From NCBI GenBank assembly GCA_001179505.1, contig CDMY01000748.1:1-64000 (forward strand): 64,000 bases of DNA, written 5' to 3'. This document shows positions 18,595 through 39,226 of this stretch, piece after piece (position 1 is the first letter of the stretch; every line of letters begins with the position of its first letter). The translations under genes and the position numbers were made by a program. The stretch is from Vitrella brassicaformis CCMP3155 (taxonomy: Eukaryota; Protista; Chromerida). Under the pieces are notes generated by a model, which saw nothing but the letters and a program-made list of their open reading frames with translations, made no database searches and was not told the DNA's origin.

Positions 18595-19450
18595 AGGGCT
18601 GATGGTAAGGCAGATGAGGGTGTTCGTTCGTGGCTGAATGCAGCGGTTTTTCTGTCTGCGAGAGAGAGAGAGGGAGGGAGGGAGGCATGCTGTCTCTGTG
18701 TGGGGTATCATTGTCACTCGACGGACGCCAGCTCGTTTCTTTCGGCTGGATGGCGTCACTGGCGGTGGTGAGAGCAGTCCTTGGTTGAAACACGACCTGG
18801 GACATCTCATGATCCGTCCCATTGCCGCCGGCGGGCCACACGAGTTGCTGCCGCTGTAGGCCTCATCCTACACCAGCGTCGTGTAGGCGCCTTTGTGTAT
18901 ATGTGAGGAGAGAAATTGAGAGGGTGTGTGTGTGCGTGCGTGCCCGGTGAAGATGGGCCGTGAGGGACGGCACACTGGACGCATCGTCCGTGCAGAGGGA
19001 CAATTGAACGGGGCTGCATTGTGGTCCGGATTAAGGTGCCTACTCAAAGAGAATCACTTCACCGCTATGGCTGCCGTCAGCCCCCTCACGGTCATCCACA
19101 TGGAGCGGGCATCGGATGCCGAGGCAGCGGCTCCGATATCATCGGCAAATTCCGCGGCGGGGACAACGTTTACATCCTTTACATCTTTCGCCGCCGTTGC
19201 GGATCGCGCGCTCTCCTCTCTCTGCGTTAGCCGTGCGACGACAGCCCTCCTGCTATCTCCCTGTCTCTCTGCCCTCTGTCTTAACGGCCGCCCCCTTCTC
19301 TGTCCATCTGCAGCATCCCTCGACTCCACTGTCATCGCTTGACTCCGAGTCTCTCTCTCTCCTCAGCTTATTCTCTTCACCAAGCGCCTTGTTGTCGTTC
19401 ATCTGCCCGCTGCTCGTCTGCGTTTCCTTCCGACGTCCGCTCCACGACCG

Positions 19451-20031
19451 ATGAAGGCCCTCTCCCTTTCCATGCTGGTGTGCCTGCTCGGCATCGCACT
19501 GGTCTGCGCTGATGATATGAAGCCAGCTGCTCCTGCTGATGCGCCGTCTGCGGTGGCACGGCGTTTGAGAGGCGGGATAGCTGACGACGCCGACGAAGTG
19601 ACATCCGATGGTACGCACACACGATGGCTGTTTGCAGCTCGTGCACACACACGCTGCACAAGTACGTGCCTTTCCTGTGTGCCTGTGTGCCTGTAGGTGG
19701 TGTGTCTGATGCTCTTGTGGCGGGGCCAGCGGCAGCAGACTGTGAGGACGCGGCTGATGAGCCGACGGCTGCACCTCCAGGTGGGTGTGCAGACATCCCC
19801 ACCTCGCCCACACGTCATCCTTGTGTTGGCCACGTGTGTGTGTGTGTGTGTGTGTGTGCAGATGAAGATGAGCCCAGTGGCCTGGAGGCCGTGGAGGAGT
19901 CATCGAGTCCCACAGAGAGGAGGCTGGGCAAGGACAAGTGGTATGAGATCAAGGACAAGCTCAAGACGAAGTGGAACAAAATCAAGCGGAAGATCAAGGA
20001 CAAGTGGTATGGGGGCGGTGGCTACTATTAG
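19451..20031 (+). CDS. Secreted RRL-motif peptide precursor, copy A (one mature module)
   Basis: Three exons (introns 19611-19696, 19781-19861): signal peptide MKALSLSMLVCLLGIALVCA, ..AVARRL, acidic spacer, SSPTERRL, GKDKWYEIKDKLKTKWNKIKRKIKDKWYGGGGYY*. Confidence 0.85.
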
Positions 20032-20849
20032 ACGCACCACAGCACACATAGTGTGTGTGGTTGGGTGCGTGTGTGGACACCCACATGGTATAAGTGTACA
20101 TATCTTTGTTGATGGCTGTGTAAAAGGGGCTCGTGCGTCTTTGTTTAAGCACGAGCACCGTACCGTCCGTGTGGAGCTGTGGGTGACATCAAGTGGGTGG
20201 CTGGTGTGTGTTTGCGTCAAGTGAGTGGATGGATGGTCCATCCCATCCAGGTGTCGATTGTGCACACACTGCAGTGTACATATCTGCTCGTTCTTTGTAA
20301 GAGAGACAAGGGGTTCAGTACCGTACAAAAAGCGAGAGGGTGTGGTGTGGTTGATTCTGGCAGTATGTTCTGTCTGTCTAAGTGTCTGTCTGTGTGCCTG
20401 TCTGCCATGATTGATGCGACCCGTGTAGCCGCGTGGGTGAGTGGGCAAGTCTTTTCCCCGCGTTTTCTTTGCTCCATTGTTCCATGTATGTGTGTATCGT
20501 ACAGCACAGCACAAGCACGCTCTCTCTGCTTGGCGCCTTGATTCGTGTGCAGCATCCTTTGACCAGTGAGTGGGACGCACTACTGAATGCATGTGTGTGT
20601 TTGGAAAGATGAGATGAGATGAGCTACGTGGAAGGGCCACACACACATGTCGTCGCGCCACGCCAACGAAAAAAGAGAACAAAACCAACAAAACCATCCC
20701 ACCACCACCCAGGCACCCGCCCACCCACCCACAGCCAGTGCGCCGCTGGCATAGCGCAATGCAGGCGTCCACCCACCAAACTAGACGCATCACACAGACA
20801 TGCTGGTGGCGGTGATGGCTACTCTACGCGCGCGCGCGCGTGTGTGTGT

Positions 20850-21652
20850 CTATCTGTGGATTGGCTGCCGTCTGGCTGCTGCGAAAAGGGGTGCCGTGGG
20901 GGCGGGGGAGAGGGGGGTGTGGGACCTGCCGATGTCATGCTGGTGGTGAGAGGCGCCGCTGGCCCCCTCCCCGTTGGCTGCCGCCTTTTCGCGCACCTTT
21001 GTGAGCAGTCTCTGCATGGAACGGGGACAACACAGAGACACACAGGTGGTCTGGTCCTGTCTGTCTGATTGTGTGTGGTTGCCCTGACCTTGTGGTGGTG
21101 TTTGTGCCTGCCCATGACTCTGCTGTGCGCCATCCTGTACTCGTCATACCCACCCGCAACTGCACAAACACCCACACACACACAGAGACAACAGCATAAG
21201 TCGATGTGTCTCTGCCCCCTCGCGGCGCTCACCTTGGACGACCACAGCGGCGTCTTCATCAAAGCTGTCGTCCTCATCCTCATGCTCCTCATCCCACCAG
21301 GCCTGCCGCACCCACCAATGCGCCGTCGTCCCGTGATCTATCGGCCACCGCTGGTCGGCTGGTCTTGTGTCTGTGTGCTTGATATGTCCGTGTGGATTGT
21401 GCTGTGTGTTGAGGGGCAACAGCGACTGGCTGGGCAGCACGGCAAATGGGTAGTAGTCATTGTCCACCTGCACACAACGCGCATCCAGGAACCATTGCAA
21501 GGGGGAGAGATGGACACAGAGAGAGGTGTTTGCTGTGTCTTTGTCTTTGCCTCCGTCGTCTCACTGCAGTGGCTCACTTACGTCGTCAGAAATGACCCAG
21601 CCCTTCAGGTCAGGCGAGTAGAACAGAAACAGCGGACTGTGAGCATCCTGCG
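20850..21652 (-). pseudogene. 5'-truncated duplicate of the last exons of the 27987-30239 gene
   Basis: Exons DAHSPLFLFYSPDLKGWVISDD, VDNDYYPF.., VAGGYDEYRM.., RSMQRLLTKV..QPIHR* are copied, but the duplication ends in the intron above them, with no start or upstream exons. Confidence 0.75.
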
Positions 21653-22082
21653 CACGCATCCACCCACCCACTCACTCACATGAATGCACACAAACTCTTG
21701 TGTCTGAAGAAGGACAAATTAGAGTCACACGACACGCACTCGGTGCTGAAGAGCACTCGTTGCATGCATTTATGTGTCTGCCTGACCGTGGCTCACGAAG
21801 ATGGAGAAGCAGTCAGTCAGAGCTCAGATGGGATAAGAACTCATCAAATTCTCATGCTGACTCAAGATCTGCTCGACCGTCGTCGCGGTCGGCAACATGG
21901 AAAGCCGAGAGGCGAAAAGGGGAAACCCATCCCTCTGAGCGCGCAGATCGAAAGAGCGCGCCACATGGTCTGAGAAGGTGAGGACCAACCAGCCACTCTC
22001 ACATCTCCATGTCCGCCTACGTTGCGTGATGCGACGCAGGCAGGCGTCAATCGGTCACCCGGTGATCCGCCACCGCGGCAGA

Positions 22083-22734
22083 ATGGTCGTTTCTATGCGG
22101 CCCCTGTCCCTCTCCCGTATCGTCTGTGCTTTGCTCTCAATCGCGATGATGGGCCCTGCTGCTTCCCTGCCAAGCGGAAACAAGATGCGCATGAGTGCAC
22201 ACCATGGGAGGAGATCTAGGGGGACCACCTTCGTGAGAATCGTGACAGGGCGTCGAAAGCATCCTGTGAATGCCCACCACACTCAGGTAGACTGACGGTG
22301 CGGGTGCCCTTGACACACTTCCGTGTGTTTGTGTGTCTGTGTGTGCGTGTGCGGCTGACTCAGGTTGCCTTTCTGTCCGCATCTTCCCGCCTGTCACCGC
22401 ACTCGCTCATCACAAGGCACGAACAGAAAGCACACACGCACCCCCCACCCCCCACACTCACACACAGGTAGCTCGCTGCATGTGTGTGCCCGTCAGATGG
22501 CCGTCTATACAGAATCACACGGCCCTACTCTCCAGCGCCACGCAGTCTGAGATAGATGACGACCCAGACCGACAAGCGTACGATCGAATCGTGACGCGGC
22601 TGAGAGAGCAGGTCGGTTGGACAGACCCAGCCATGAAACGGCGCATTTTGTGCATTCCTTCCTCTATGTAGGGCGAGGAGGAGTTACTTGCGTCATTAAC
22701 CTTCGAACTTTGGAAAACATTCAAGGGCGCAGGT

Positions 22735-22765
<31 letters not shown>

Positions 22766-24839
22766 CAGCAAAGGTGTGTAGGCTGTTTGTCTGTCTGTTG
22801 TATGTCGGTGTCGATTTGGTTCAACGTGTGCCAACAGAGCGCGGCGAGCAACCTGTGCCAACAGAGCGTGTCGAGTTGACCAAGAATGACCTCATGGACC
22901 TGGCTGACGTGCCCTTGCCTGAAGAGATTATCGACCAAACCAAGGAGCCCCCAAAATTCATCGGCGATACCTATCTCAACAACGCCCTTATGTTGCTGGA
23001 GGCTGAGTATCAGCAAGAAACTGACTATGCTGCGTATCGTGTGGCGCCGATGACATTCACTCGCTTCTCGCGCGGTGGCAAAACGACAATGTTGTACGAG
23101 ATGGGCAACAGACTAAAAGCGAAGCGCATGAATCCGCTCTTTGTTTCCTTCAACGAGGGCTCATTGTACTCGACTGGCGCGAAAGGCGAGCAGGCCTTCG
23201 CCCCGACACTGCTCGACTCAGTCTACCTCCGGGCGGCGTGGGCGGCGGCCAAGACGGAGACGCGTGAGGCGGTTGCAGAGAGGGCAGGCGTCGCTGTGGA
23301 CAGGCTGCGTTTCTCGGATTGGCTCAAGCACGTGTCTGTCACAAGGGAGACGATTGACAACTGGCTTGGGGATCAACCATGTGTCATGCTTATCGACGAG
23401 TTAAACAAGGTGGTCAAGCGTGAGCGCTATCTTCATATGGAGAACGACCTAGGCGAGTACCTGAAGACCGACTTCCTCTTGAAGGGGCAGCGCTACTTCG
23501 TCTTCTCCAGCCACGTCACCACAATCAAGAACGACCTCAGGAAGTTTCTGAACTGTGACAGCAACCGACCGGTCCTTCAGCCACGGCTGCCCGTTATCGG
23601 TGTGGAGGATCTGAAGCACGTGCGAGACTTCTATGGAGCAAGCCCAGCTGTTACTTGCTGGGCTGGAAGGTCGCCCGCACTCCTGTGGGTCAGCCGCAAC
23701 TACAAAATCGCGAATGGCTGACGGACGACGTGGAAGAACCCTTCTATCGTGGTGAGCTGACGCGAGAGAAAGTATTGCTTTTGTTGGTCTGCGTACTGAA
23801 GACAGCTATCGACGGCCGCTTCCCTGCCGGCACCAAATCTGACGGCATCGGCGAGTGGTCGAGGCGAATGGACGTCTTCCAGGACGACAAGGGAGACGAG
23901 GTGCATGTGTGGCCTCCCTGCTATCTCGCCTCCACGCTTGCGTGGCTGTACTGGAGAGAAGCGACAAGAGACAAGCTTGGGATGCCGTTCAGCGAAGGGC
24001 TCTATGCTATGCAGGATTTCCTCAAGGAGCTCGCCACTGCAAAGGACGAGTCGGGAGAGCAGTGGGGGGCTCCCTGTCGGGCAGCCGTCACTCTGCGCAT
24101 GCTGCAAAGCGACTTGCTTCAGAGGAACGATACTGAACTGGAGGACATCCCCCCTATGCCAGCCGAGCTCTCGCAGCTTGTGCCGCCTGCCGTCTTCGCA
24201 GCCCCTGGGAGGTCCCGTGGCTGTCAGTTCGGCGGATGTATCGTCAATGATAGCTGGACAGGCACTATGACTCTTGCCGAGTGGCTGGAAGTTGGCGTCT
24301 CCCACGAGTTCACTCTGTTCCCCTCCCTCAAGAGCGGCACCACTGCCTTCCTGCTGCAGCCCGGTTTGGACCGCTTTTATGAGTTCGACTTCTTTATTGT
24401 CGTCACGAAGGATGGCAAACTGGACGACGTGTGGGCCTACCAGTGTCGGCGCGGGGCGGAAGCACCACCAGAAGAGACGGGGACTGAGGGCATGCCATTT
24501 GACCTCTCTGCAGCCAGCAATTCTTTCCCTCTCCCTTCGCCTGCACCCAGCGGGAGCGGCTTGCTGGGGGAACTTCGGCGGCGACTCCAGTCTGCCTTCG
24601 CCCCTCCCCCGGCATCCCCAGTCACGATGAAGTGTGTCTACCTTAGAAAGAGGTCTGACGACAAGGGAGAAACACGAGTCATCGTCGGCAAGGGCAGGGG
24701 GATCAAGTGGATCGTTCCATCGCAGAGTGACCTGCAGCTGCTGAGTGGTTCGTCATTGGCAGCAACGTGTCCTTTTGATCTGTTGAGCGAGCCGCTGGAC
24801 ACATGGATACGGAGGGAAGAGGGGTTGGATGGCAGGTAG
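22083..24839 (+). pseudogene. Crinkler-like P-loop NTPase plus restriction-endonuclease-fold protein, disrupted
   Basis: Signal-peptide-like exon MVVSMRPLSLSRIVCALLSIAMMGPAA; Walker A-like RFSRGGKTT, Walker B MLIDELN, FVFSSH; C-terminal P..DRFYEFDFFIV..WAYQCR. In-frame TAG at 22669-22671 and a frame change near 23700 within a ~2 kb intronless exon. Confidence 0.7.
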
Positions 24840-25586
24840 TGCAGTCACTCGCTGCACGCATTCTGCTCTTCTCGATGTACCCTGCCGCCCGTTTAGGTGA
24901 AGGTGTCTGTATGCAGCGATGATGTGTCTTATAGTGATGTGTGTATGTTTCAAACTGTGAAGGCTGTGACAGTTGTGTGTGAAGAAGACACTGACATTAC
25001 TTCTTTCTGTGGCAGGGCGCAGATAGAATGGATGACTTGTATGGATCAATATGCGCGAACCATACAGCACATACGTCCCAAAGCGACTACATAGCGAACA
25101 CACAAAACACTTCATACAGTGCCCCACCCCCCCACCCTCATTTGTCACGCTCATCATTCAGCGTTCAACATATGTACACATATAGTGTCGACACTAAATA
25201 CGCTCAGCCACACAGCGCAATCGATTGAATGAATGAATGTGTGCGTAGATGTTCATTCGATAATTCAAGGCACTTGTCTTTCTTTGAGCAAGGGTCCCTG
25301 AGCCTCAGTGAGCTTCAGTGAGAAGTTGCGTTCGTGTCAGCCTCATGTCATGATCATGGCTTTGTACGGTCGACTGTCTGGAAAGTCACAACTTGTTGTA
25401 CACACATACGCGAAAGAGCTCCGTCCGATAGTCACGCAGTTGAATGCACACGCCGCACACACATAGGTACACTAGTCCTCGTGGACGCATGTATCAGTCA
25501 GCCCACCATGACCGCATTCGCCTGCACGACACACGACACACAACAAAGTGACACATCCAGACAGACAGACAGACAGCTGGCCTACC

Positions 25587-27758
25587 CACCTCAGCAGCGG
25601 GTTCGATGGCCTCGAGTATGCGGTTGACTTTCATGCAGATGTGTCCGATCTTGGCGTCCCATCTTTTGAGGTGCTCACTCTCGGTGACGCCAAAGTGGAT
25701 GACGCCCTTGCGCTGGTCGATGTAGCCCTCCAGGTTGCTGTCCAATATCATGCGGGCCGCCACCTTCTCGGCCTTGCGGGGGTCCACCTCCAGCAGCGAC
25801 CCGAACTCACCCAGCAGCATATTGCTGTACACCTTGGAGGCCGCCAACACATCTGCACACACACAGAGACATGGTGAAGAACCACATGTGTGTTTGTGTG
25901 TGTGTTTGCGTGTGTGGTTGGCTTACTGTGTTGGAGTACGGCGCGGTCGAGTACTGTGGAGCCGTCAGCGAAGGAGGCCTTCTGGTGCTCCATCAGAGTC
26001 TCTGTAAAGACACACACACAACGTACAGACCAATACGGGAAGTGAATGTCTCTCTCCTCTCATACCTGCGAATTTGGCCACTTCTGCGCCTCGTATGATG
26101 CGTTCGTGGAACATCTTCTTGAGCACACCGTAGCTCTCCAGCTTGGGCACACGGTCGTCCTGCACTCACCACACACACGCACATACACACACGTCGGCTG
26201 TGTCGCGACCGACCTACCTTCATCAGAATGGCGAGGAGGCGAGACCGCTGCGGGCCTGATACAAACATCATGGCACAGCACAGCACGGTCAGGATGAACG
26301 AATTCGTGGATTTGCAGCATGGCGCGTGTGTGTGAGTGTGCCGTCCATCCATCCATCCATCCATCCATCGATGGTGCAGACCCCCCTACCAGCAGGTGCC
26401 AGGATGGCGCATGTGCAGGCATTCTTGAGGAGCTTCTCCAGGTCCTCCTCATCCTGACGACGGACGGATGCATGACTCATCCAGTCGACCATGACCCCTT
26501 TGCCGCGTCTGTGTGTGTGTGTTCGTACGATTTGCAGGTTGTTGAGGTTCAGCGACAGGTCATAGTACCTGAACCAACACACACAGGCACACACACACAC
26601 ACACACGCACGCACACACACAGACGTGAAGACGTGTGGGTCACACTCACTGCCTGACCGGTTTGCTGCGAGCTGGAACTGACGCTTCGAGTCCACAATGC
26701 GGGCATACGTCACCTACACGACACACACGGCACACACATGCACACACACACACAGGGGTCCCTCCATGTGTGTGTGTGGACTGGCGTGCGCGGCTGACTT
26801 TGTATCTGAGGTTGAGACTGACGTCGTCCACCTCGTGGATGATCATCGACGCACGAGTGCAGTAGGCCTCTGGACGGATGACACGCATCACATCAACCAC
26901 CACACACACACAATCACTCCTTCCGCCCACGCCGCCTCACCGGCCGACACGGCATCCTCGTCTTCGAGGAAGAGCTCGGCTATCTTGACATACTTCTCGG
27001 CCTTCTCTGCCACACTGCGCTGGCTGAACAAACACACACACACACACACACACACGCGCACAGATGTCTGTGTGTGTGTCTGTCTGTAAGAGGGAGGGGG
27101 TGTCTGTGCGGGCTCACCGTGAGCCGCTCTCCAGATTGATTTGGGCCAGGCAGCGGGCAGCGGCTGAAAACTCCTGTGTGCGGCGATGGAAAGCACACAA
27201 AACACACGCCACATGTGCCTGTACGTGTCATGTTTAGCCTCAGGTCAACACTCACCCCCTCATGCTGATGCACAGCAGCCAGGTGCTCGCGAATGATGTA
27301 ATCCTGCACACAGACACACACACACACACACATCCACAGGCGCCATTTGCCATCAACGTGTCCGTGTATGTGTGCATGTGAGCTGACCTCTTCCTCGTAG
27401 GACACCACTCGTGCGCGCATCTTGTCGAGTGCGTGTACGGCGAGTATCTTCTTGTTACCGTCCGCCATGCCGCCCATCTTCACCGCCACCTCGTGCAGCA
27501 GCGGACGCGAAAACAGCGCAAACTGAGACGAATCCTCACTCAGTACTTAACACACAAATCAACACATCACACTCGTGAGTGTGCTCCAACTCTTCTGTCT
27601 GACTGTGTTGACTCACTGAAGTCGACGAGCCGCGTGAGTTCTGGCACTTTCTCCTGTGCGCACAGTGCGGCGACGAGCTCGTTGAATCGCGCCATGCGGG
27701 CGCTGGCCTCGCTGACGCTGTTGAGGATGGCAGTGATTTCGGCAGGCGCCGTTGCCAT
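25587..27758 (-). CDS. COPS4: COP9 signalosome subunit 4 (PCI domain)
   Basis: MRARVVSYEEE, YVKIAELFLEDED, CAILAPAGPQRSRLLAILMKDDR, STVLDRAVLQHNVLAASKVYSN, AEKVAARMI..GYIDQ..IHF; 3' end approximate. Confidence 0.9.
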
Positions 27759-27854
27759 GATGAGATGAATGCGCAGCAAACAAACAACAATGCGCGTCGG
27801 ACAAAGGAAGATACCAACACAGCGGCTGTTGGGAGATCTTTCTGTACCCTTCAA

Positions 27855-27862
27855 AGCTCGCA
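27855..27862 (+). promoter_or_regulatory. AGCTCGCA motif in the COPS4 / membrane-protein divergent spacer
   Basis: Exact motif between the ATGs at 27758 (-) and 27987 (+). Confidence 0.45.
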
Positions 27863-27986
27863 AGCGATCCTGGTCGGGCCAGGGAGATCCTGGCACCCCG
27901 TTGAAGCCTTTTTCCCTCGTTGATGCATTCACGGAAGTGGTTGAGAGACCCTGGTACTTGGGCATCGTAGCTCGTGTGTGTGTGAG

Positions 27987-30239
27987 ATGGCGTCTTTCCG
28001 GGCGTTGAAGCGGCGGAGGGAGTCTGACTTTCGCGAAGGGCTGCTGATAGACGACGGGAGCAGCGATGGGAAGGCCAAGGGGCTGAACAAGGTGGGCGAA
28101 CGCACCGTCATCCACGAGGCGATGAGTGGAATGCATGGAGGGAAGGATGGACGCGTTGATCCTCTCTGTCTGTTTGTTACTCTCCTATTTCATCAGGTGC
28201 CTTTCATCGCTGTGTTGAGTGGCGTTGTGGTCGGGGTGATCCTCTTCACCCACTTCAGCATCAACTACTCGCCAATCGCCAGAAACAACGGTACCATTTC
28301 ACCAATTTCACCACACACACAAGGAGGCAAATCACGGACAACCATGTTTCCTTTTTTCTGTTCTGTGCCCCGCTCCGTTGTCAGGCTCTTCTCCCCATCA
28401 GACAGCCAACGACCACCCTCCCGCCTACCACTTCCACGAGTACGGCAAACACAACGATGCCAGCCACAGCAGCAGCAGCAGCAGTGCGGAGGACGACCAC
28501 CCCGGGGGCGGCCGCTACCGTGTGCAGTTTGAGGACGACTACGGGCACGATGACGGGTGGGGGGATGACTATGACGACTATGAGGAGGAGCTCGACGACT
28601 ACCGCTATGGCGACCCGGACAGATACTATGACGAGGAAGAACGGCGCGAAAAGGTCGGTGGGATGTGAGGAGGAAGGGGAAGCAGAGAAAGGGTGACTGA
28701 CGGTGTACAGCTGTGGCTCTCTTTCTGTTGGCTGGCCGGCCAGTTGCACGATGCTCTCGGCCGTCGATTTGCGTCGCATGAGCACAAGTCCAACAAACTC
28801 TCGTGGCTGGTACGAGAGCGACCACCGGCACACACTCCCCCCCCCCNNNNNNNNNNNNNNNNNNNNNNNNNNNNNNNNNNNNNNNNNNNNNNNNNNNNNN
28901 NNNNNNNNNNNNNNNNNNNNNNNNNNNNNNNNNNNNNNNNNNNNNNNNNNNNNNNNNNNNNNNNNNNNNNNNNNNNNNNNNNNNNNNNNNNNNNNNNNNN
29001 NNNNNNNNNNNNNNNNNNNNNNNNNNNNNNNNNNNNNNNNNNNNNNNNNNNNNNNNNNNNNNNNNNNNNNNNNNNNNNNNNNNNNNNNNNNNNNNNNNNN
29101 NNNNNNNNNNNNNNNNNNNNNNNNNNNNNNNNNNNNNNNNNNNNNNCCCCCCCCCACATGCATCCGTATTCTCTCTCTCAGCTCGGTGGGCGTGACATGG
29201 TGGCAATGCCGACCTCGCCAGCGTCACCATCGGCACCATCGTCGGGTCAGCAGAGCGACGTGGCCATTCCGCTGCACCTGATCGTCTTTGGGAGGACGGT
29301 CGAGAACACGGCACGCATCAACGGGCACTACCACTGGACGGGCACCAAGAACAAGAGGCCATGCTACAAAAAGGTTAGGGGGTCGGTGGCTGGGAGGGAG
29401 AAGGGGATGTCTGTCTGTCGTCTGTCGTCAATGTGTGTGCAGGACGCGCACAGTCCGCTGTTTCTGTTCTACTCGCCTGACCTGAAGGGCTGGGTCATTT
29501 CTGACGACGTAAGTGAGCCACTGCCGTGAGACGACAGAGGCAAAGACACAGAAAACACCTCCCTCTCTCTCTCTCTCTCTCTCTCTTTTTGCCATGGATT
29601 CCTGGATGCGCGCGTGCAGGTGGACAATGACTACTACCCATTTGCCGTGCTGCCCAGCCAGTCGCTGTTGCCCCTCAACACACAGCACGACCCACACGGA
29701 CATACCAAGCACACAGACACAACGCCGGCCGACCAGCGGTGGCCGATAGATCACGGGACGACGGCGCATTGGTGGGTGCGGCAGGCCTGGTGGGATGAGG
29801 AGCATGAGGATGAAGACGACAGCTTTGATGAAGACGCCGCTGTGGTCGTCCAAGGTGAGCGCCGCGAGGGGGCAGAGAGACACACATCGACTGATGCTGT
29901 TCTGTTGATGTGTGTGTTTGTGCAGTTGCGGGTGGGTATGACGAGTACAGGATGGCGCACAGCAGAGTCATGGGCAGGCACAAACACCACCACAAGGTCA
30001 GGGCAACCACACACAATCAGACAGACAGGACCAGACCACCTGTGTGTGTGTGTCTGTGTTGTCCCCGTTCCATGCAGAGACTGCTCACAAAGGTGCGCGA
30101 GAAGGCGGCCGCACACGGGGAGGCTGCCAGCGGCGCCTCTCACCACCAGCATGACATCGGCAGGTCCCACACACCCCCCTCCCCCGTCCCCACAGCACCC
30201 CTTTTCGCAGCAGCCAGACGGCAGCCAATCCACAGATAG
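27987..30239 (+). CDS. Type II membrane protein of unknown function (spans an assembly gap)
   Basis: Basic N-terminus, TM VPFIAVLSGVVVGVILFTHF, Asp/Tyr/His-rich exon, module ARINGHYHWTGTKNKRPCYKK..LFLFYSPDLKGWVISD, His-rich tail. Confidence 0.65.
28847..29146. other. Assembly gap (300 N)
   Basis: N run flanked by poly-C tracts. Confidence 0.99.
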
Positions 30240-32384
30240 ATCCACACACACACACACACACGTAGAGTAGCCATCACCGCCACCACAGCATATCTGTGTG
30301 ATGCGTCTGGTTCGGTGGGCGGACATGGGCATGGCGCTATGCCAACGGCGCACTGGCTGTGGGTGGTTGGGCGGGTGGGTGGGTCGGTGGCAGGGTGGGA
30401 TGCTTTTGTTGGTTTTGTTCTCTTTTTTGTTTGGGCGTGGCGCGACGACATGTGTGTGTGGCCCTTCCATGTAGCTCATCTCATCTCATCTCATCTATCT
30501 CAATGCAAAGACATGCTCAACGAAACGCCTCCGTTCATTGATGAGTTTCATTCGCTCGAGGTCTCTTCTTCACCATACACCCCCACACCCACCCACACAC
30601 CCACATGCATTCAGCAGTATACGTCCCACTCACTGGTCAAAGGATGCTGCACACGAATCAAGGCGCCAAGCAGAGAGAGCGTGCTTGTGCTGTGCTGTAC
30701 GATACACACATACACGGAAAAATGGAGCAAAGAAAACACGTGAAAAGACTTGCTCACTCACACACACGGCTACACGGGTCGCATCAATCATGGCAGACAG
30801 GCAAACAGACAGACACTTAGACAGACAGAACATACTGCCAGAATCAGCCACCCCACACCCTCTATCGCTTTGTGTCCGCTACTGAACCCCCTGTCTCACT
30901 AACAAAGAACGACCAGATATGTACATGTGTGTGCACAATGGACACCTGGATGGGATGGACCATCCATCCAGTCACTTGAGGCAAACACACACCAGCCACC
31001 CACCCACTTGATGTCATCCACAGCTCCACACGTACGGTACGGTGCTCGTGCTTAAACAAAGGCGCACGAGCATTTTACACAGCCATCAACAGAGATATGT
31101 ACACGCTATACCAAATGTGTGTGTCCACACACCCAACCCCACACACACTACGTGTGTGTCATCACACGCACCCGCACACACTATGTGTGTTGTGGTGTGT
31201 CTAATAGTATCCGCCGTAACCACCACCGTAGCCGCCGCCATACCCACCGCCACCATACCCACCGCTGCCATCCTTCTTGTTCTTGTACTTACCCCACTTG
31301 TCCTTGATCTTATCCCACTTGTCCTCGAGCTTGTCCCAGAAGTCCTTGCCCAGCCTCCTCTCTGTGGGACTCGATGCTTCCTCCACATCCTCCAGGCCGT
31401 ACCCACCACCGTACCCACCGCCGTACCCGCCGCCATACTTCTTGTTCTTGTAGCCATACTTCTTGGGCTTATACCTAAGCCAGTTGGGCTTGATCCTAAG
31501 CTTGTCCCAGAAGTCCGGGCCCAGCCTCCTCTCTGTGGGACTCGATGACTCCTCCACGGCCTCCAGGCCACTGGGCTCATCTTCATCTTCATCTCCATCT
31601 GCAAACATACTCACACACACGTGGCCAACACAATGACGTGTGGGCGGGGTGGCGATGTCTGCACACCCACCTATAGGTGCGGCCGTCGGCTCATCAGCCG
31701 CGTCCTCACTGTCTGCTGCCGCTGGCCCCGTCACAAGAGCATCAGGCACACCACCTACAGGCAGACAGGTACACAGGAAAGGCGTAATTGTGCAGTGTCT
31801 GCACCAGCTGCAAACAGCCATCGTGTGTGCGTACCATCGGATGTCACTTCGTCGGCGTCATCAGCTATCCCGCCTCTCAAACGCCGGGCCACCGCAGACG
31901 GAGCATCAGCAGGAGCAGCCCGCTTCATATCGTCAGCGCAGACCAGTGCGATGCCGAGCAGGCACACCAGCACCGAAAGGGAGAGGGCCTTCATCGGTCG
32001 TGGAGCGGACGTCGGGAGGAAGCGCAGACGAGCAGCGGGAAGACGAACAACGACAAGGGGCTTGCTGAAGAGAATAAGTCGAGGAGCGAGAGAGACTCGG
32101 AGTCAACCGATGAGAGTGGAGTCGAGGGATGCTGCAGATGGACAGAGAGGGGGGAGGCCGTTAAGACAGAGGGCAGAGAGACAGGGAGATAGCAGGAGGG
32201 CTGTCGTCGCACGGCTAACGCAGAGAGAGGAGAGCGCGGTGTGCCGCAACGGCGGCGAAAGATGTAAAGGATGTAAACGTTGTCCCCGCCGCGGAATTTG
32301 CCGATGATATCGGAGCCGCTGCCTCGGCATCCGATGCCCGCTCCATGTGGATGACCGGGAGGGGGCTGACGGCAGCCATAGCGG
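29431..32384 (-). repeat. Right arm of the inverted duplication
   Basis: Reverse complement of 19062-21659; longer mainly because of the extra peptide module and indels. Confidence 0.9.
31201..31994 (-). CDS. Secreted RRL-motif peptide precursor, copy B (two mature modules)
   Basis: MKALSLSVLVCLLGIALVCA..AVARRL..SSPTERRL-GPDFWDKLRIKPNWLRYKPKKYGYKNKKYGGGYGGGYGGGYG-LEDVEEASSPTERRL-GKDFWDKLEDKWDKIKDKWGKYKNKKDGSGGYGGGGYGGGYGGGYGGYY*. Confidence 0.85.
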
Positions 32385-36352: not shown

Positions 36353-36652
36353 NNNNNNNNNNNNNNNNNNNNNNNNNNNNNNNNNNNNNNNNNNNNNNNN
36401 NNNNNNNNNNNNNNNNNNNNNNNNNNNNNNNNNNNNNNNNNNNNNNNNNNNNNNNNNNNNNNNNNNNNNNNNNNNNNNNNNNNNNNNNNNNNNNNNNNNN
36501 NNNNNNNNNNNNNNNNNNNNNNNNNNNNNNNNNNNNNNNNNNNNNNNNNNNNNNNNNNNNNNNNNNNNNNNNNNNNNNNNNNNNNNNNNNNNNNNNNNNN
36601 NNNNNNNNNNNNNNNNNNNNNNNNNNNNNNNNNNNNNNNNNNNNNNNNNNNN
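36353..36652. other. Assembly gap (300 N)
   Basis: N run followed by poly-C and (CT)n. Confidence 0.99.
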
Positions 36653-36749: not shown

Positions 36750-39226
36750 TCAGTAGGGCGATGCCCTGGATGCACCGGGCTCGGTTTTCACAAGTACAGC
36801 ACGATACTCATACTCGTGTGGCATGTCCCTAGCTGCTCTGTGTGTGTGCGCGTACGGGGAGGGCGAGATGCTCTGGGACGACATCGGCTGCTGCTGCTGC
36901 TGGTACTCCACCTGCTGCTGGGCGTAGGACGGCATCATGGCGGCCGCCGCCTGATAGTACTGCTGCTGCTGCTGATGGCCAGTGAATCGAATATCTACGC
37001 CGCCGCCCTCCACACCATAAGCTGACACATACAGACAGACAGACAGACAGACAGACAACAGAGGACACACATGAAGGTCTGCACATCATCCCATTCCCTC
37101 TCCCCTTCCCTCTTCTTACCAGCAAAAGCGGACGCCATCGGCACCGCCTGTGTCTGTGGCTGCACCATGGCCCCTCCACCCACCCCGCCCCCCTGTGGCT
37201 GAGCCGCATACACCACACCCACACCGCCACCACCCACACCCACACTCGTGTAGCCATGCGGCTGCTGAGCAAGAGAATGAGAGCGCGGCTGCGGCTGCAC
37301 CGCTTGGGGCGGCGGTGGGGCGCCGGCCTCGCCCGACGAGCGCGCATACGTGTAGGCCGCCTGGCCGTATGGATGCGACTGCATGACGGCCGCTGCTGGT
37401 GCTGGTGCTGCGGTGGCGTATGGGTACGGTGTGGACGGGGGTGGAGCGCCGTAAGCGGCCACTTGTGTGACGGCCGATGGGGTGGCGTATGGCGGGGTGG
37501 AGGTGCCGTAGGCGTGCACCTGTTGTGCTGCTGCTGTTGCTGCCGCTGCTGCGTATTGCGTGTGCTGCGAGGGGAGGGTGTACTGGACAGGGACGGACGC
37601 CTGGGCGGTGGCCTGATGGGTGGTCTGGGAGGGGTAGGNNNNNNNNNNNNNNNNNNNNNNNNNNNNNNNNNNNNNNNNNNNNNNNNNNNNNNNNNNNNNN
37701 NNNNNNNNNNNNNNNNNNNNNNNNNNNNNNNNNNNNNNNNNNNNNNNNNNNNNNNNNNNNNNNNNNNNNNNNNNNNNNNNNNNNNNNNNNNNNNNNNNNN
37801 NNNNNNNNNNNNNNNNNNNNNNNNNNNNNNNNNNNNNNNNNNNNNNNNNNNNNNNNNNNNNNNNNNNNNNNNNNNNNNNNNNNNNNNNNNNNNNNNNNNN
37901 NNNNNNNNNNNNNNNNNNNNNNNNNNNNNNNNNNNNNNGGGGGGATTATGTGTCAGTCAGTTGTCACGCTGCCATTGTGTGCGTACTGGCGGTGCCGGGC
38001 GTCCTGCCCTTGGTCTTCCACTCCTTCTGCAGCTCCTTGGGTGTGGCCTTCTTGACCTCCACCCACTTGTTCTTGAACTTGTGGTACGTGTTGTGCGCAA
38101 CCACCGCATCCGCACCCTCAGGACTCGCAAAGGTAATGAAACCGAACCTGACCGACCAGAGCAAAGCAGACAGACATACAGGGGGTGGATGGAGCGCTCC
38201 GTGTCCGTTCGGGTGTCATTCGCTCACCCCCTCGGCTTTTGTGTGTCCCTGTCCTTCATGAGCACGGCATCGACCACCTTGCCAAAGTTCTCAAAGTAAG
38301 AGCGGAACTCATCTGTGACACAACGCACACACACACGCACACACACACACACAGAGGACACACTGAGGCGTGCGTCAGACTCCGCGCATCGGGGTGTGTG
38401 TGTGTGTGTGTGTGAGGGTGCGTACCTTCTGTGAGGTCCGGCAGCCCGCCCACGAATATCTTTTCAGTCCTGAACGATTGAGGGACGTCAACCTGAACGG
38501 ACGGACACACGACAGAAACGACACGTGGGATATGCCGGAGGTCAGTCTGTCATCCTGTGTGCCTCCCTGACGTTGTGCGAAGGCTTCGACGTCGACACGG
38601 AGGTCGTCCCCGGCAGCGCATTGCGGGGGGCTGCACGCTTCACGTCAACCTGTACCCAGACACACACACACACGCGGCCGGTGCCTCTCTGCGTGTGCGT
38701 GAGTGTGTGTGTGTGTGTGTGACTGTGTACCTCCTTGCTGTCGAGCTGGTGTTTCCTTTCCCGAAGACACCGCTCCATGCTCGGCTCGTCTGCGTAGGTC
38801 ACGAAGCCGAAACCACGGCTGCGACCTGCACACGCACACGTACAATGTGTGTTGTGCGTATTTGTGTGGACGGGCGTTAACTGAGAGTGTGTGTCTGTGT
38901 CACCTGTCGAGCTGTCGTACATCACGATGGCATCGGCCAGAGGGCCGAACCGACTGAAGTACTCGTGAAGCGTCTCTGAGGCAACACACACACACACACA
39001 CACACAGTACACAGTACACAGTTCGCACGCCCAGCCAGCACTTCACAAGCAAGCTCCTCTGATCTTTGTCTTTGCTCAACCGTGACAAGCTCATCGACAC
39101 GAGCGCTCCCCCGCCCCCCGTGTGCGAGTGTCCCCTCCTTTGTCCCTCACCCTTGGTCGTCTCCTGGGACAGCCCTCCGATGAACAGCTTGAGACCGTCG
39201 TACACGCCGCCGCCATCAAACGACAT
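36750..39226 (-). CDS. Two-RRM Musashi/hnRNP A-DAZAP1-like RNA-binding protein with a Tyr/Ala/Gln/Pro low-complexity tail
   Basis: KLFIGGLSQETTKETLHEYFSRFG..GRSRGFGFVTY..EVDVKRA; KIFVGGLP..GFITF..KWVEVKKATPK; the gene spans the 37639-37938 gap. Confidence 0.88.
37639..37938. other. Assembly gap (300 N)
   Basis: N run flanked by G-rich sequence. Confidence 0.99.

Follow-up and report, generated by a model that had tools for sequence, protein, structure and literature searches.

RxL-bearing secreted precursors with divergent cationic peptides in Vitrella brassicaformis: a candidate defense-peptide family

Processing at RXL sites is known from diatoms, where such sites lie behind the signal peptide and at the borders of Lys-rich units in the precursors of silaffins, cingulins, and silacidins (PMC4557024). 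The aspartyl protease ASP5 cleaves RRLxx after the Leu residue, and its sites lie in N-terminal as well as C-terminal positions of its substrates (PMC4764566). Here, a gene family with features of both systems is described from Vitrella brassicaformis CCMP3155, a free-living relative of the apicomplexans. Two members of this family, referred to as copy A (19451–20031, + strand) and copy B (31201–31994, − strand), are located in the window that was analyzed (64,000 nucleotides of scaffold C748, C748:1–64000). A first-pass annotation of this window had described the two as precursor-like, secreted proteins that combine a conserved prepro cassette with divergent cationic peptides, and this observation is confirmed. 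The family is larger than that annotation saw, as a genome-wide search finds 12 members in two subfamilies with a common exon plan and a common precursor layout consisting of a signal peptide, an ARRLRGG motif, an acidic spacer, an RxL site, and a cationic peptide. A tentative reading, for which the case is close to evenly balanced, is that these genes encode prepropeptides that would be cleaved at RxL by a plasmepsin V/ASP5-type enzyme to release cationic defense peptides. The interpretation given in the first-pass annotation is, as a whole, partly supported.

The overall build of these precursors is similar to that of Sil1p from Cylindrotheca fusiformis, in which the signal peptide is closely followed by an RXL site, an acidic domain, and Lys-rich units that are bounded by RR-x-L/RXL and set free by an endopeptidase (PMC4557024). 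The tandem modules of copy B are likewise comparable to the arrangement in Sil1p and in the RXL wall proteins of diatoms (cingulins, silacidins, and frustulins). However, there is no sequence homology with Sil1p, and the Vitrella peptides lack KxxK boxes, contain almost no Ser, and have Trp, a Gly/Tyr tail, and a predicted helix. Also in contrast to Sil1p, the Vitrella RxL site is found in the acidic linker before each peptide rather than at the end of the basic unit, and, unlike the diatoms, Vitrella is an alveolate that is not known for silica. Similarities to the ASP5/TEXEL system include a signal peptide, an RRL motif located 17–22 residues past the signal cut, agreement with the RRLxx consensus (PMC4764566), and a gene for an orthologous-type protease in the same organism (scaffold C688). 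The motif also falls within 15–30 residues after the signal peptide, as in PEXEL proteins. In contrast to TEXEL/PEXEL substrates, the Vitrella products are predicted to be small free peptides rather than dense-granule effectors, and the organism is not a parasite. Furthermore, unlike PEXEL, the Vitrella sites do not carry E/Q/D at P2′, and one site is RGL.

Members of the family were identified by six-frame searches of the genome using exon 1, exon 3, and an exon 1 profile. Subfamily 1 has eight close members, five of which are on C748 with one each on C366, C582, and C738. Subfamily 2 has four members (L019–L022) that form two tandem pairs (C342:50034 and 52558; C338:108951 and 111484); L019 and L020 contain an additional pro-region block of about 39 residues, and L022 is without exon 2. 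Exon 1 encodes the signal peptide and the invariant ..PS..ARRLRGG, while exon 3 encodes the cationic peptide and, directly before it, a short conserved stretch with the second site at its end. The predicted signal peptide is composed of an MK n-region and a hydrophobic core of 16 residues, and the cut is preceded by V-x-A or A-x-A. That of copies A and B was correctly described as common to both; it comprises 20 residues, has a hydrophobic core, and shows V-x-A at its predicted cut. The shared N-terminal ..AVARRL is part of ..PSAVARRL (residues 32–39), and R37, R38, L39, R40, G41, and G42 are invariant in 12/12 genes. This N-terminal RRL begins 17 residues (subfamily 1) to 20–22 residues (subfamily 2) past the predicted signal cut. 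Weak matches to the exon 1 profile at C305, C613, C523 (two matches), C313, and C291 have at most a similar signal peptide and no RRL cassette, and are not members.

At the second site, the junction reads SSPTERRL in subfamily 1 and D/E-R-R-R/G-L in subfamily 2. In the window, the previously noted LE.VEE.SSPTERRL junction does precede every C-terminal module (once in copy A and twice in copy B). Conservation of RRL across the family, the lack of which the first-pass annotation had named as grounds for refutation, holds for 24/25 motif instances in the 12 genes, the remaining instance being RGL at one junction of L020. Across both subfamilies the P3 Arg and the P1 Leu of the junction are invariant and P2 is Arg or Gly, and the invariant core of the site is therefore RxL rather than strictly RRL. 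The P1′–P2′ residues are RG at the N-terminal site and GK, GP, GL, LG, II, or QF at the junctions. Retention of the junction and the N-terminal motif goes beyond chance, because both are kept in 12 paralogs from two subfamilies that can hardly be aligned in the rest of exon 3.

Both paralogs in the window are real genes, as claimed, and the list of open reading frames (ORFs) together with direct reading of the sequence gives three exons for each. The two introns in each copy are GT-AG introns of phase 1. Copy A extends from ATG to stop in exons 19451–19610, 19697–19780, and 19862–20031. Its annotation is the uncharacterized protein CEM32205.1 (P0004), whose splice sites are identical to those of the copy A model and whose start is an internal Met located 7 residues past the ATG conserved in all paralogs. 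Exon 1 of copy A encodes the signal peptide (19451–19510), the N-terminal pro-piece with its RRL codons (19559–19567, within RRLRGG at 19559–19576), and the start of the acidic spacer, and ends at a phase-1 donor (G followed by GTACGC). Intron 1 (19611–19696, 86 nucleotides, GT..AG) is followed by exon 2, which encodes acidic spacer and evolves almost neutrally (dN/dS, the ratio of nonsynonymous to synonymous rates, about 1), and then by intron 2 (19781–19861, 81 nucleotides, GT..AG). Exon 3 opens with the pro-segment DEDEPSGLEAVEESSSPTERRL (19862–19926, RRL codons 19918–19926), the most constrained part of the gene, and continues with the predicted mature peptide (19927–20028), which has 34 residues, a net charge of +8, and a Lys-rich amphipathic helix followed by a GGGGYY tail. 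A (GT)n microsatellite lies directly before the acceptor site of intron 2 in copy A. In both copies intron 2 has a length that is a multiple of three and is free of stop codons (81 nucleotides, 19781–19861; 72 nucleotides, 31670–31599), so a retained intron would keep the reading frame.

Copy B is encoded on the opposite strand by exons 31994–31835, 31754–31671, and 31598–31201, with a predicted product of 213 residues. The codons of its N-terminal RRL are at 31878–31886 (residues 37–39). The module 1 peptide (31396–31521) is preceded by SSPTERRL (31545–31522) and has 42 residues and a net charge of +8, extending from GPDFWDKL to (GGGY)3G. An inter-module linker, LEDVEEASSPTERRL (31351–31395, net charge −3), is an internal copy of the pro-segment (repeat I14) and leads into the module 2 peptide (31204–31350), which has 49 residues, a net charge of +3, GKDFWDKL at its start, and a long GGGY tail. 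No annotated protein for copy B is present among the matches to a protein search with copy B exon 3. The gene models of the family match the database proteins P0001, P0002, P0004–P0007, and P0011.

Splicing and expression of the family are evident from cDNA-like reads, which were aligned to the copy B stretch. Runs X1 and X8 hold joined forms, one of which is an exon 1/exon 2 junction omitting an 80-nucleotide intron (joint 31752>31833 in X1) that is homologous to intron 1 of copy A. In a second joined form, found in X8 and X1, inserted letters rebuild the exon 2/exon 3 join of copy A (..GCACCT-CC-AGATGAAGATGAG..). A loose end in X8 leads out of exon 2 into the final bases of exon 1, and a 180-base skip in X8 has the look expected for the transcript of a single-module paralog aligned to copy B. 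MMETSP transcripts exist for both subfamilies, including P0003, which ends in the copy A peptide. P0003 is a mosaic with an exon 1 like that of the C748:157516 gene, an exon 2 and pro-segment like those of the C582 gene, and a mature peptide identical to that of copy A, so that it represents either paralogs merged into a chimera by de novo assembly or a recombinant gene in another strain. Contigs from the runs X3 and X4 are DNA-like, cross the introns, and have zero mismatches to copy B (31189–31456), with the two-module exon among the parts matched, which identifies copy B as real DNA. Expression is established for copy A and its relatives at the least. Transcription, one of the checks proposed in the first-pass annotation, is thus borne out by the spliced copy-A-type junctions and the MMETSP transcripts, and not for the junction between the two modules of copy B, which is considered below.

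The charge of the precursors is partitioned between the spacer and the C-terminal peptide. The net charge of the spacer is −15 to −20 in subfamily 1 and −3 to −7 in subfamily 2, and the Asp/Glu-rich spacers already noted in copies A and B carry −16 and −19, respectively. The predicted mature peptides have net charges of +3 to +13. Peptides of subfamily 1 are rich in Lys, Trp, and Tyr, with 10–16 aromatic residues and 9–14 Lys/Arg each (the L012 peptide, for example, has 48 residues and a net charge of +10), and (GGGY)n or (GRGY)n tails are found in 7/8 genes, with L016 lacking a tail. The copy A peptide has the composition originally given (34 residues, of which 11 K and 1 R are basic and 3 D and 1 E are acidic), as well as Trp, Ile, or Leu at positions 5, 8, 12, 16, 19, 23, and 27, a spacing of 3-4-4-3-4-4. 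Both modules of copy B begin with G.DFWDKL and finish in GGGY repeats, again as described. The mature peptides of copies A and B contain Lys in K-x-K spacing and no Ser except for one in module 2 of copy B. Peptides of subfamily 2 are magainin-like helices (LGEFLGKVKQF..) that end in a C-x3-C or C-x5-C loop and have no Gly/Tyr tail.

Structure prediction with AlphaFold2 finds order only in the signal peptide (helix at residues 2–27) and in the helix of the mature peptide, with a predicted local distance difference test (pLDDT) score of 63–81 for these helices and disorder in the remainder. In P0002, the mature helix spans residues 106–130 (pLDDT 63–75) and stands in front of the Gly/Tyr tail. 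The hydrophobic moment was computed over 18 residues and compared with composition-matched shuffles. For copy A, the proposed amphipathic helix is predicted at residues 98–125 (pLDDT about 80) with a moment of 0.56, which is reached by 3.6% of shuffles. The corresponding values are 0.2% for module 2 of copy B (moment 0.56), 1.8% for L016, and 0.8–5.2% for subfamily 2.

Divergence between the two copies is concentrated in the mature part. At the nucleotide level, copies A and B are 95% identical in both the 5′ flank and exon 1; the figures for intron 1, exon 2, intron 2, and the 3′ flank are 94%, 93%, 87%, and 92%, respectively. In exon 3, identity is 100% (65/65) over the pro-segment up to RRL versus 72%, with 216 gap columns, over the mature part, in agreement with the near-identical pro-regions and divergent peptides reported for the pair. 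In subfamily 1, dN/dS is 0.42 for exon 1, 0.99 for exon 2, 0.12 for the pro-segment before RRL (pN/pS, the ratio of nonsynonymous to synonymous proportions of differences, 0.15), and 0.47 for the mature part (dN 0.17, compared to 0.11–0.15 for introns; pN/pS 0.59, confidence interval (CI) 0.33–1.21). In subfamily 2, the prepro exons are almost identical (dN 0.02–0.03; dS 0–0.07), while the mature part has pN > pS in 6/6 pairs and a pN/pS of 1.64 (CI 0.96–3.15; 4% of bootstrap replicates ≤1). Positive selection on the mature peptides is suggestive only. In the comparison of pro and mature regions that had been proposed as a check, the pro-segment is the most constrained region, the mature part is the most divergent, and the mature pN/pS of subfamily 1 is not above 1.

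These patterns also bear on whether the precursors are processed at all. The proteins could instead act as unprocessed, disordered secreted proteins that hold acidic and basic blocks in one chain, for example as a self-neutralizing coacervate or mucilage, with RRL used for sorting or binding. The predicted disorder of the entire pro-region and the almost complete cancellation of the charge blocks are in line with this proposal, and cleavage has so far been inferred only. However, the strongest purifying selection acts on roughly 20 residues ending in RRL, copy B repeats the pro-segment between its modules, and the spacer encoded by exon 2 evolves neutrally. This combination fits a recognition site with a disposable spacer, making an unprocessed role improbable.

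The Vitrella genome contains about a dozen pepsin-type loci. One of these, at C688:~132600–133100 (L049:1468–2631, − strand), is a 388-residue open frame for a plasmepsin V/ASP5-type aspartyl protease. Its best matches are PDB 4zl4/8tyf (E 4e-39), the next pepsin family follows at 3e-7, and the margin is 100 bits. The alignment conserves the DTGS motif and the Cys-rich insert, with the frame representing only part of the catalytic domain. A protease of this type, which the idea of ancestral substrates requires, is clearly encoded in the genome. Two further aspartyl protease ORFs that were considered as plasmepsin V-like, L059 and L042, are ordinary pepsin/cathepsin-like enzymes instead.

The position of the putative cut could differ if the processing enzyme were a subtilisin-like convertase that cuts after Arg-Arg. 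In this case the peptide would begin with Leu, and the Leu would be conserved for other reasons. Cleavage of this kind is the rule for animal and fungal peptide precursors, RR is present at 25/25 sites, and the RRGL junction of L020 keeps the RR pair though P2 of the RxL becomes Gly. In contrast, the distance of the Leu from the invariant Arg is fixed throughout both subfamilies, and it is the second Arg that changes register. A plasmepsin V-type enzyme is present, and its relatives cut after RxL, whereas a six-frame search of the genome found no kexin P-domain, although this negative is weak given short exons. In addition, a kexin-type enzyme would destroy products, because KR pairs are located inside several of the predicted mature peptides (copy A, L016, L019, L020, and L022). 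Dibasic cleavage is consequently considered unlikely.

According to the tentatively favored reading, the signal peptide would direct the precursor into the endoplasmic reticulum. The invariant ARRLRGG leader is followed by a disordered and strongly acidic spacer that may balance the charge of the C-terminal peptide. The conserved segment ending in R-x-L would serve as the endoproteolytic site, where a cut after Leu would free the cationic peptide and the spacer would be discarded. The enzyme would most likely be the plasmepsin V/ASP5-type aspartyl protease on scaffold C688. Copy A is predicted to yield a single amphipathic Lys/Trp helix of 34 residues that carries a short Gly/Tyr tail, and copy B to yield two Lys/Trp/Tyr peptides with (GGGY)n tails. 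A multi-peptide precursor layout is suggested for copy B because its tandem modules each follow the same site. Once released, the peptides would function extracellularly in defense or competition by acting on microbial membranes, constituting an algal host-defense-peptide system. The traits of host-defense precursors are present, as the prepro region is conserved, the spacer is anionic, and divergence is greatest in the mature peptide, which is cationic and amphipathic. A role as defense peptides is the most likely function, with a wall or adhesive role as its chief rival. Defense is favored because one leader is combined with two unrelated cationic classes, the pN/pS of subfamily 2 is above 1, helices are predicted, and Vitrella has a bacteria-rich life (in culture, about 80% of sequence reads are bacterial (PMC4501334)).

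Several points weigh against RxL cleavage and defense. Cleavage, peptides, and activity rest on inference, and the dibasic RR at every site makes the sequence alone compatible with a subtilisin-type cut after Arg-Arg. Module 1 of copy B would retain a 15-residue acidic C-terminal extension unless it is cut again, and its C-terminal boundary is not explained by RxL cleavage alone. The junction between modules 1 and 2 of copy B (31276–31416) has zero depth in X1 and X8. The hydrophobic face of the peptides is narrow and their overall character very hydrophilic, and for the GP.FWDKLKYYKNK type, to which most subfamily 1 peptides belong, the hydrophobic moment is not above that of shuffles. This peptide type is also under purifying selection (L012 versus L014: pN 0, pS 0.23), which fits a conserved structural role as well as defense, and the mature pN/pS of 0.59 for subfamily 1 does not exceed 1. 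Finally, instead of selection, the raised mature pS could be due to codon misalignment in low-complexity sequence or to gene conversion that acted on the flanks. Since synonymous divergence is raised in the mature parts, leader gene conversion or alignment noise contributes to the divergence pattern.

The chief rival to defense is that the same precursors are processed and the Lys/Tyr/Gly products become part of an adhesive or of the thick, laminated wall of the cell or sporangium, where they would be cross-linked through tyrosine (dityrosine, Lys-Tyr). Parallels for such a role are the Tyr-rich peptides of the coccidian oocyst wall, the silaffins and cingulins of diatoms, and the mussel foot proteins. 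The (GGGY)n/(GRGY)n tails in 7/8 subfamily 1 genes, which AlphaFold2 predicts to be disordered, and the many aromatic and Lys/Arg residues would suit this chemistry, as would the purifying selection on the main peptide type of subfamily 1 (pN 0–0.05 versus pS 0.18–0.28). The build also matches the diatom Sil1p precursor (PMC4557024). However, subfamily 2 and L016 use the same prepro cassette without a Gly/Tyr tail, and the amphipathic helices, terminal Cys loop, and pN/pS above 1 of subfamily 2 are unusual in structural proteins. The tail of copy A has merely six residues, Ser is nearly absent (one, in module 2 of copy B) and with it the phosphoserine chemistry of silaffins, and neither Pfam nor the profile search revealed a relationship to any family of wall proteins. 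A wall or adhesive role is for these reasons regarded as rather doubtful, though it is to be taken seriously.

Database searches indicate that this is an orphan family that is private to Vitrella and not found in Chromera. An exhaustive profile search of 1.84 billion protein representatives gave no homolog outside Vitrella, nor did word-based searches with exon 3 of copy B and exon 3 of L019. One T/A/S-rich protein of 832 residues (E 2.8e-4 in the profile search) has no RxL at all and was set aside as low-complexity noise. Searches of Pfam with every exon and with the full-length database proteins gave only noise (NPR1_like_C, E 0.065; Cytomega_UL20A, 0.57; DUF2990, 0.21). In the ESM Atlas, the mature peptides of both copies had no feature match and only generic helix or helical-hairpin structures. 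No account of this peptide family was found in the literature on antimicrobial peptides or plasmepsin V in Vitrella, or on PEXEL in the two chromerids.

Five members (P0001, P0002, and P0005–P0007) carry the automatic UniRef name 'RxLR effector protein', a label that evidently arises because RRLR formally matches RxLR and is accompanied by a signal peptide. If the name were apt, RRLR and the acidic stretch would deliver the C-terminal part of the protein into coral host cells. Like oomycete RxLR effectors, the Vitrella proteins do have a signal peptide, an R-x-L-R motif among roughly the first 60 residues, and an acidic stretch after it, and RRLR at residues 37–40 is at the usual distance from the signal peptide. 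Unlike the oomycete effectors, they have no EER motif (the downstream acidic stretch is DDADE), no WY-type domain, and no match in Pfam, including the oomycete RXLR family (E up to 10, noise aside), and they contain a second, internal RxL before a tiny peptide. The C-terminus is predicted by AlphaFold2 to be a single helix rather than a folded effector domain, Vitrella is free-living, and the family is without oomycete relatives. A function as host-translocated effectors is very improbable.

In the genome, copies A and B are carried by the two arms of a convergent inverted segmental duplication. The left arm (19062–21659) carries copy A and the right arm (29431–32384) carries copy B, with 15 inverted pairs that are 80–99% complementary. 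The arms, at 84–99% complementarity overall, are about 2.6–2.9 kb in length and are separated by a unique spacer of roughly 7.8 kb. The full arms are private to the A/B pair, as the other C748 paralogs share only about 1.2 kb (the gene and short flanks). This unique spacer contains an assembly gap of 300 N (28847–29146), which is outside both genes, is 2055 bases from the stop codon of copy B, and is crossed by no exon, intron, or arm. The convergent orientation of copies A and B may rest on the scaffold join at this gap. A second convergent pair of paralogs is found at C748:98923–99545 (+) and 110225–109630 (−), about 11 kb apart with no N gap between them, and the fifth C748 copy, at C748:157516 (+), is single. 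The family expands locally, partly as inverted pairs. Two more 300-N gaps in the window (36353–36652 and 37639–37938) are away from both genes. Between the arms, at 22774–24839 (+), there are two long, overlapping, intron-less open frames of 315 and 394 residues whose sole match, to an AAA ATPase, is below threshold (E 0.0025, 18.7 bits versus a cut-off of 21.2).

Plasmepsin V and ASP5 are proteases that are essential to parasites and serve as drug targets. The family bears on the origin of the PEXEL/TEXEL pathway and on the role of the plasmepsin V/ASP5 ancestor before parasitism, as it offers concrete, expressed candidate substrates in a simple context of signal peptide, site, spacer, site, and peptide. 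A more speculative proposal, which is doubtful at present, is that RxL precursors are the native substrates of the chromerid plasmepsin V/ASP5 ortholog and that PEXEL/TEXEL export descends from a prohormone-convertase-like maturation of secreted defense (or wall) peptides in the free-living, photosynthetic ancestor of the apicomplexan parasites. If the defense reading is true, the family would constitute the first reported antimicrobial-peptide system of a chromerid and a rare gene-encoded arsenal of cationic peptides in a unicellular alga that lives amid dense bacterial consortia. The family also provides a case of evolution with a constant leader and a hypervariable product, as with the venom and skin peptides of animals. 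If the wall reading is true instead, the family would tie chromerid walls to the Tyr-rich chemistry of coccidian oocyst walls and to the RXL processing of diatoms.

Comparison with other peptide systems offers further context for both readings. The Vitrella peptides carry Tyr-rich tails, and the profile search found no homolog of any kind, the coccidian Tyr-rich oocyst-wall precursors (GAM56/GAM82 type) included. The tails of L017 and L018 (GYGRGYGRGYGGGYGGYW) are of the Gly/Tyr type seen in the NLP/CNC peptides of Caenorhabditis elegans. Like the nlp-29 cluster, the Vitrella genes encode small secreted peptides with GGY/GRGY-type repeats and occur as clustered recent duplicates that diversify (PMC2453101). 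Unlike NLP/CNC peptides, those of Vitrella have a Lys/Trp helix before the repeat and a long acidic pro-region, and there is no homology between the two. The precursors of amphibian skin peptides (dermaseptin/preprodermaseptin) and the cathelicidins similarly combine a conserved signal peptide and acidic pro-region with hypervariable cationic peptides of unrelated classes, and in these genes, as in Vitrella, both synonymous and nonsynonymous divergence are concentrated in the mature part. The peptides of subfamily 2 resemble the magainin and brevinin types with a C-terminal disulfide loop. In contrast to the amphibian precursors, the Vitrella site is RxL rather than Lys-Arg, there is no homology, the organism is a unicellular alga, and activity is predicted by analogy only. 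RXL-processed polycationic precursors and host-defense-peptide precursors are known kinds, and what is new here is a variant of them in the chromerid lineage.

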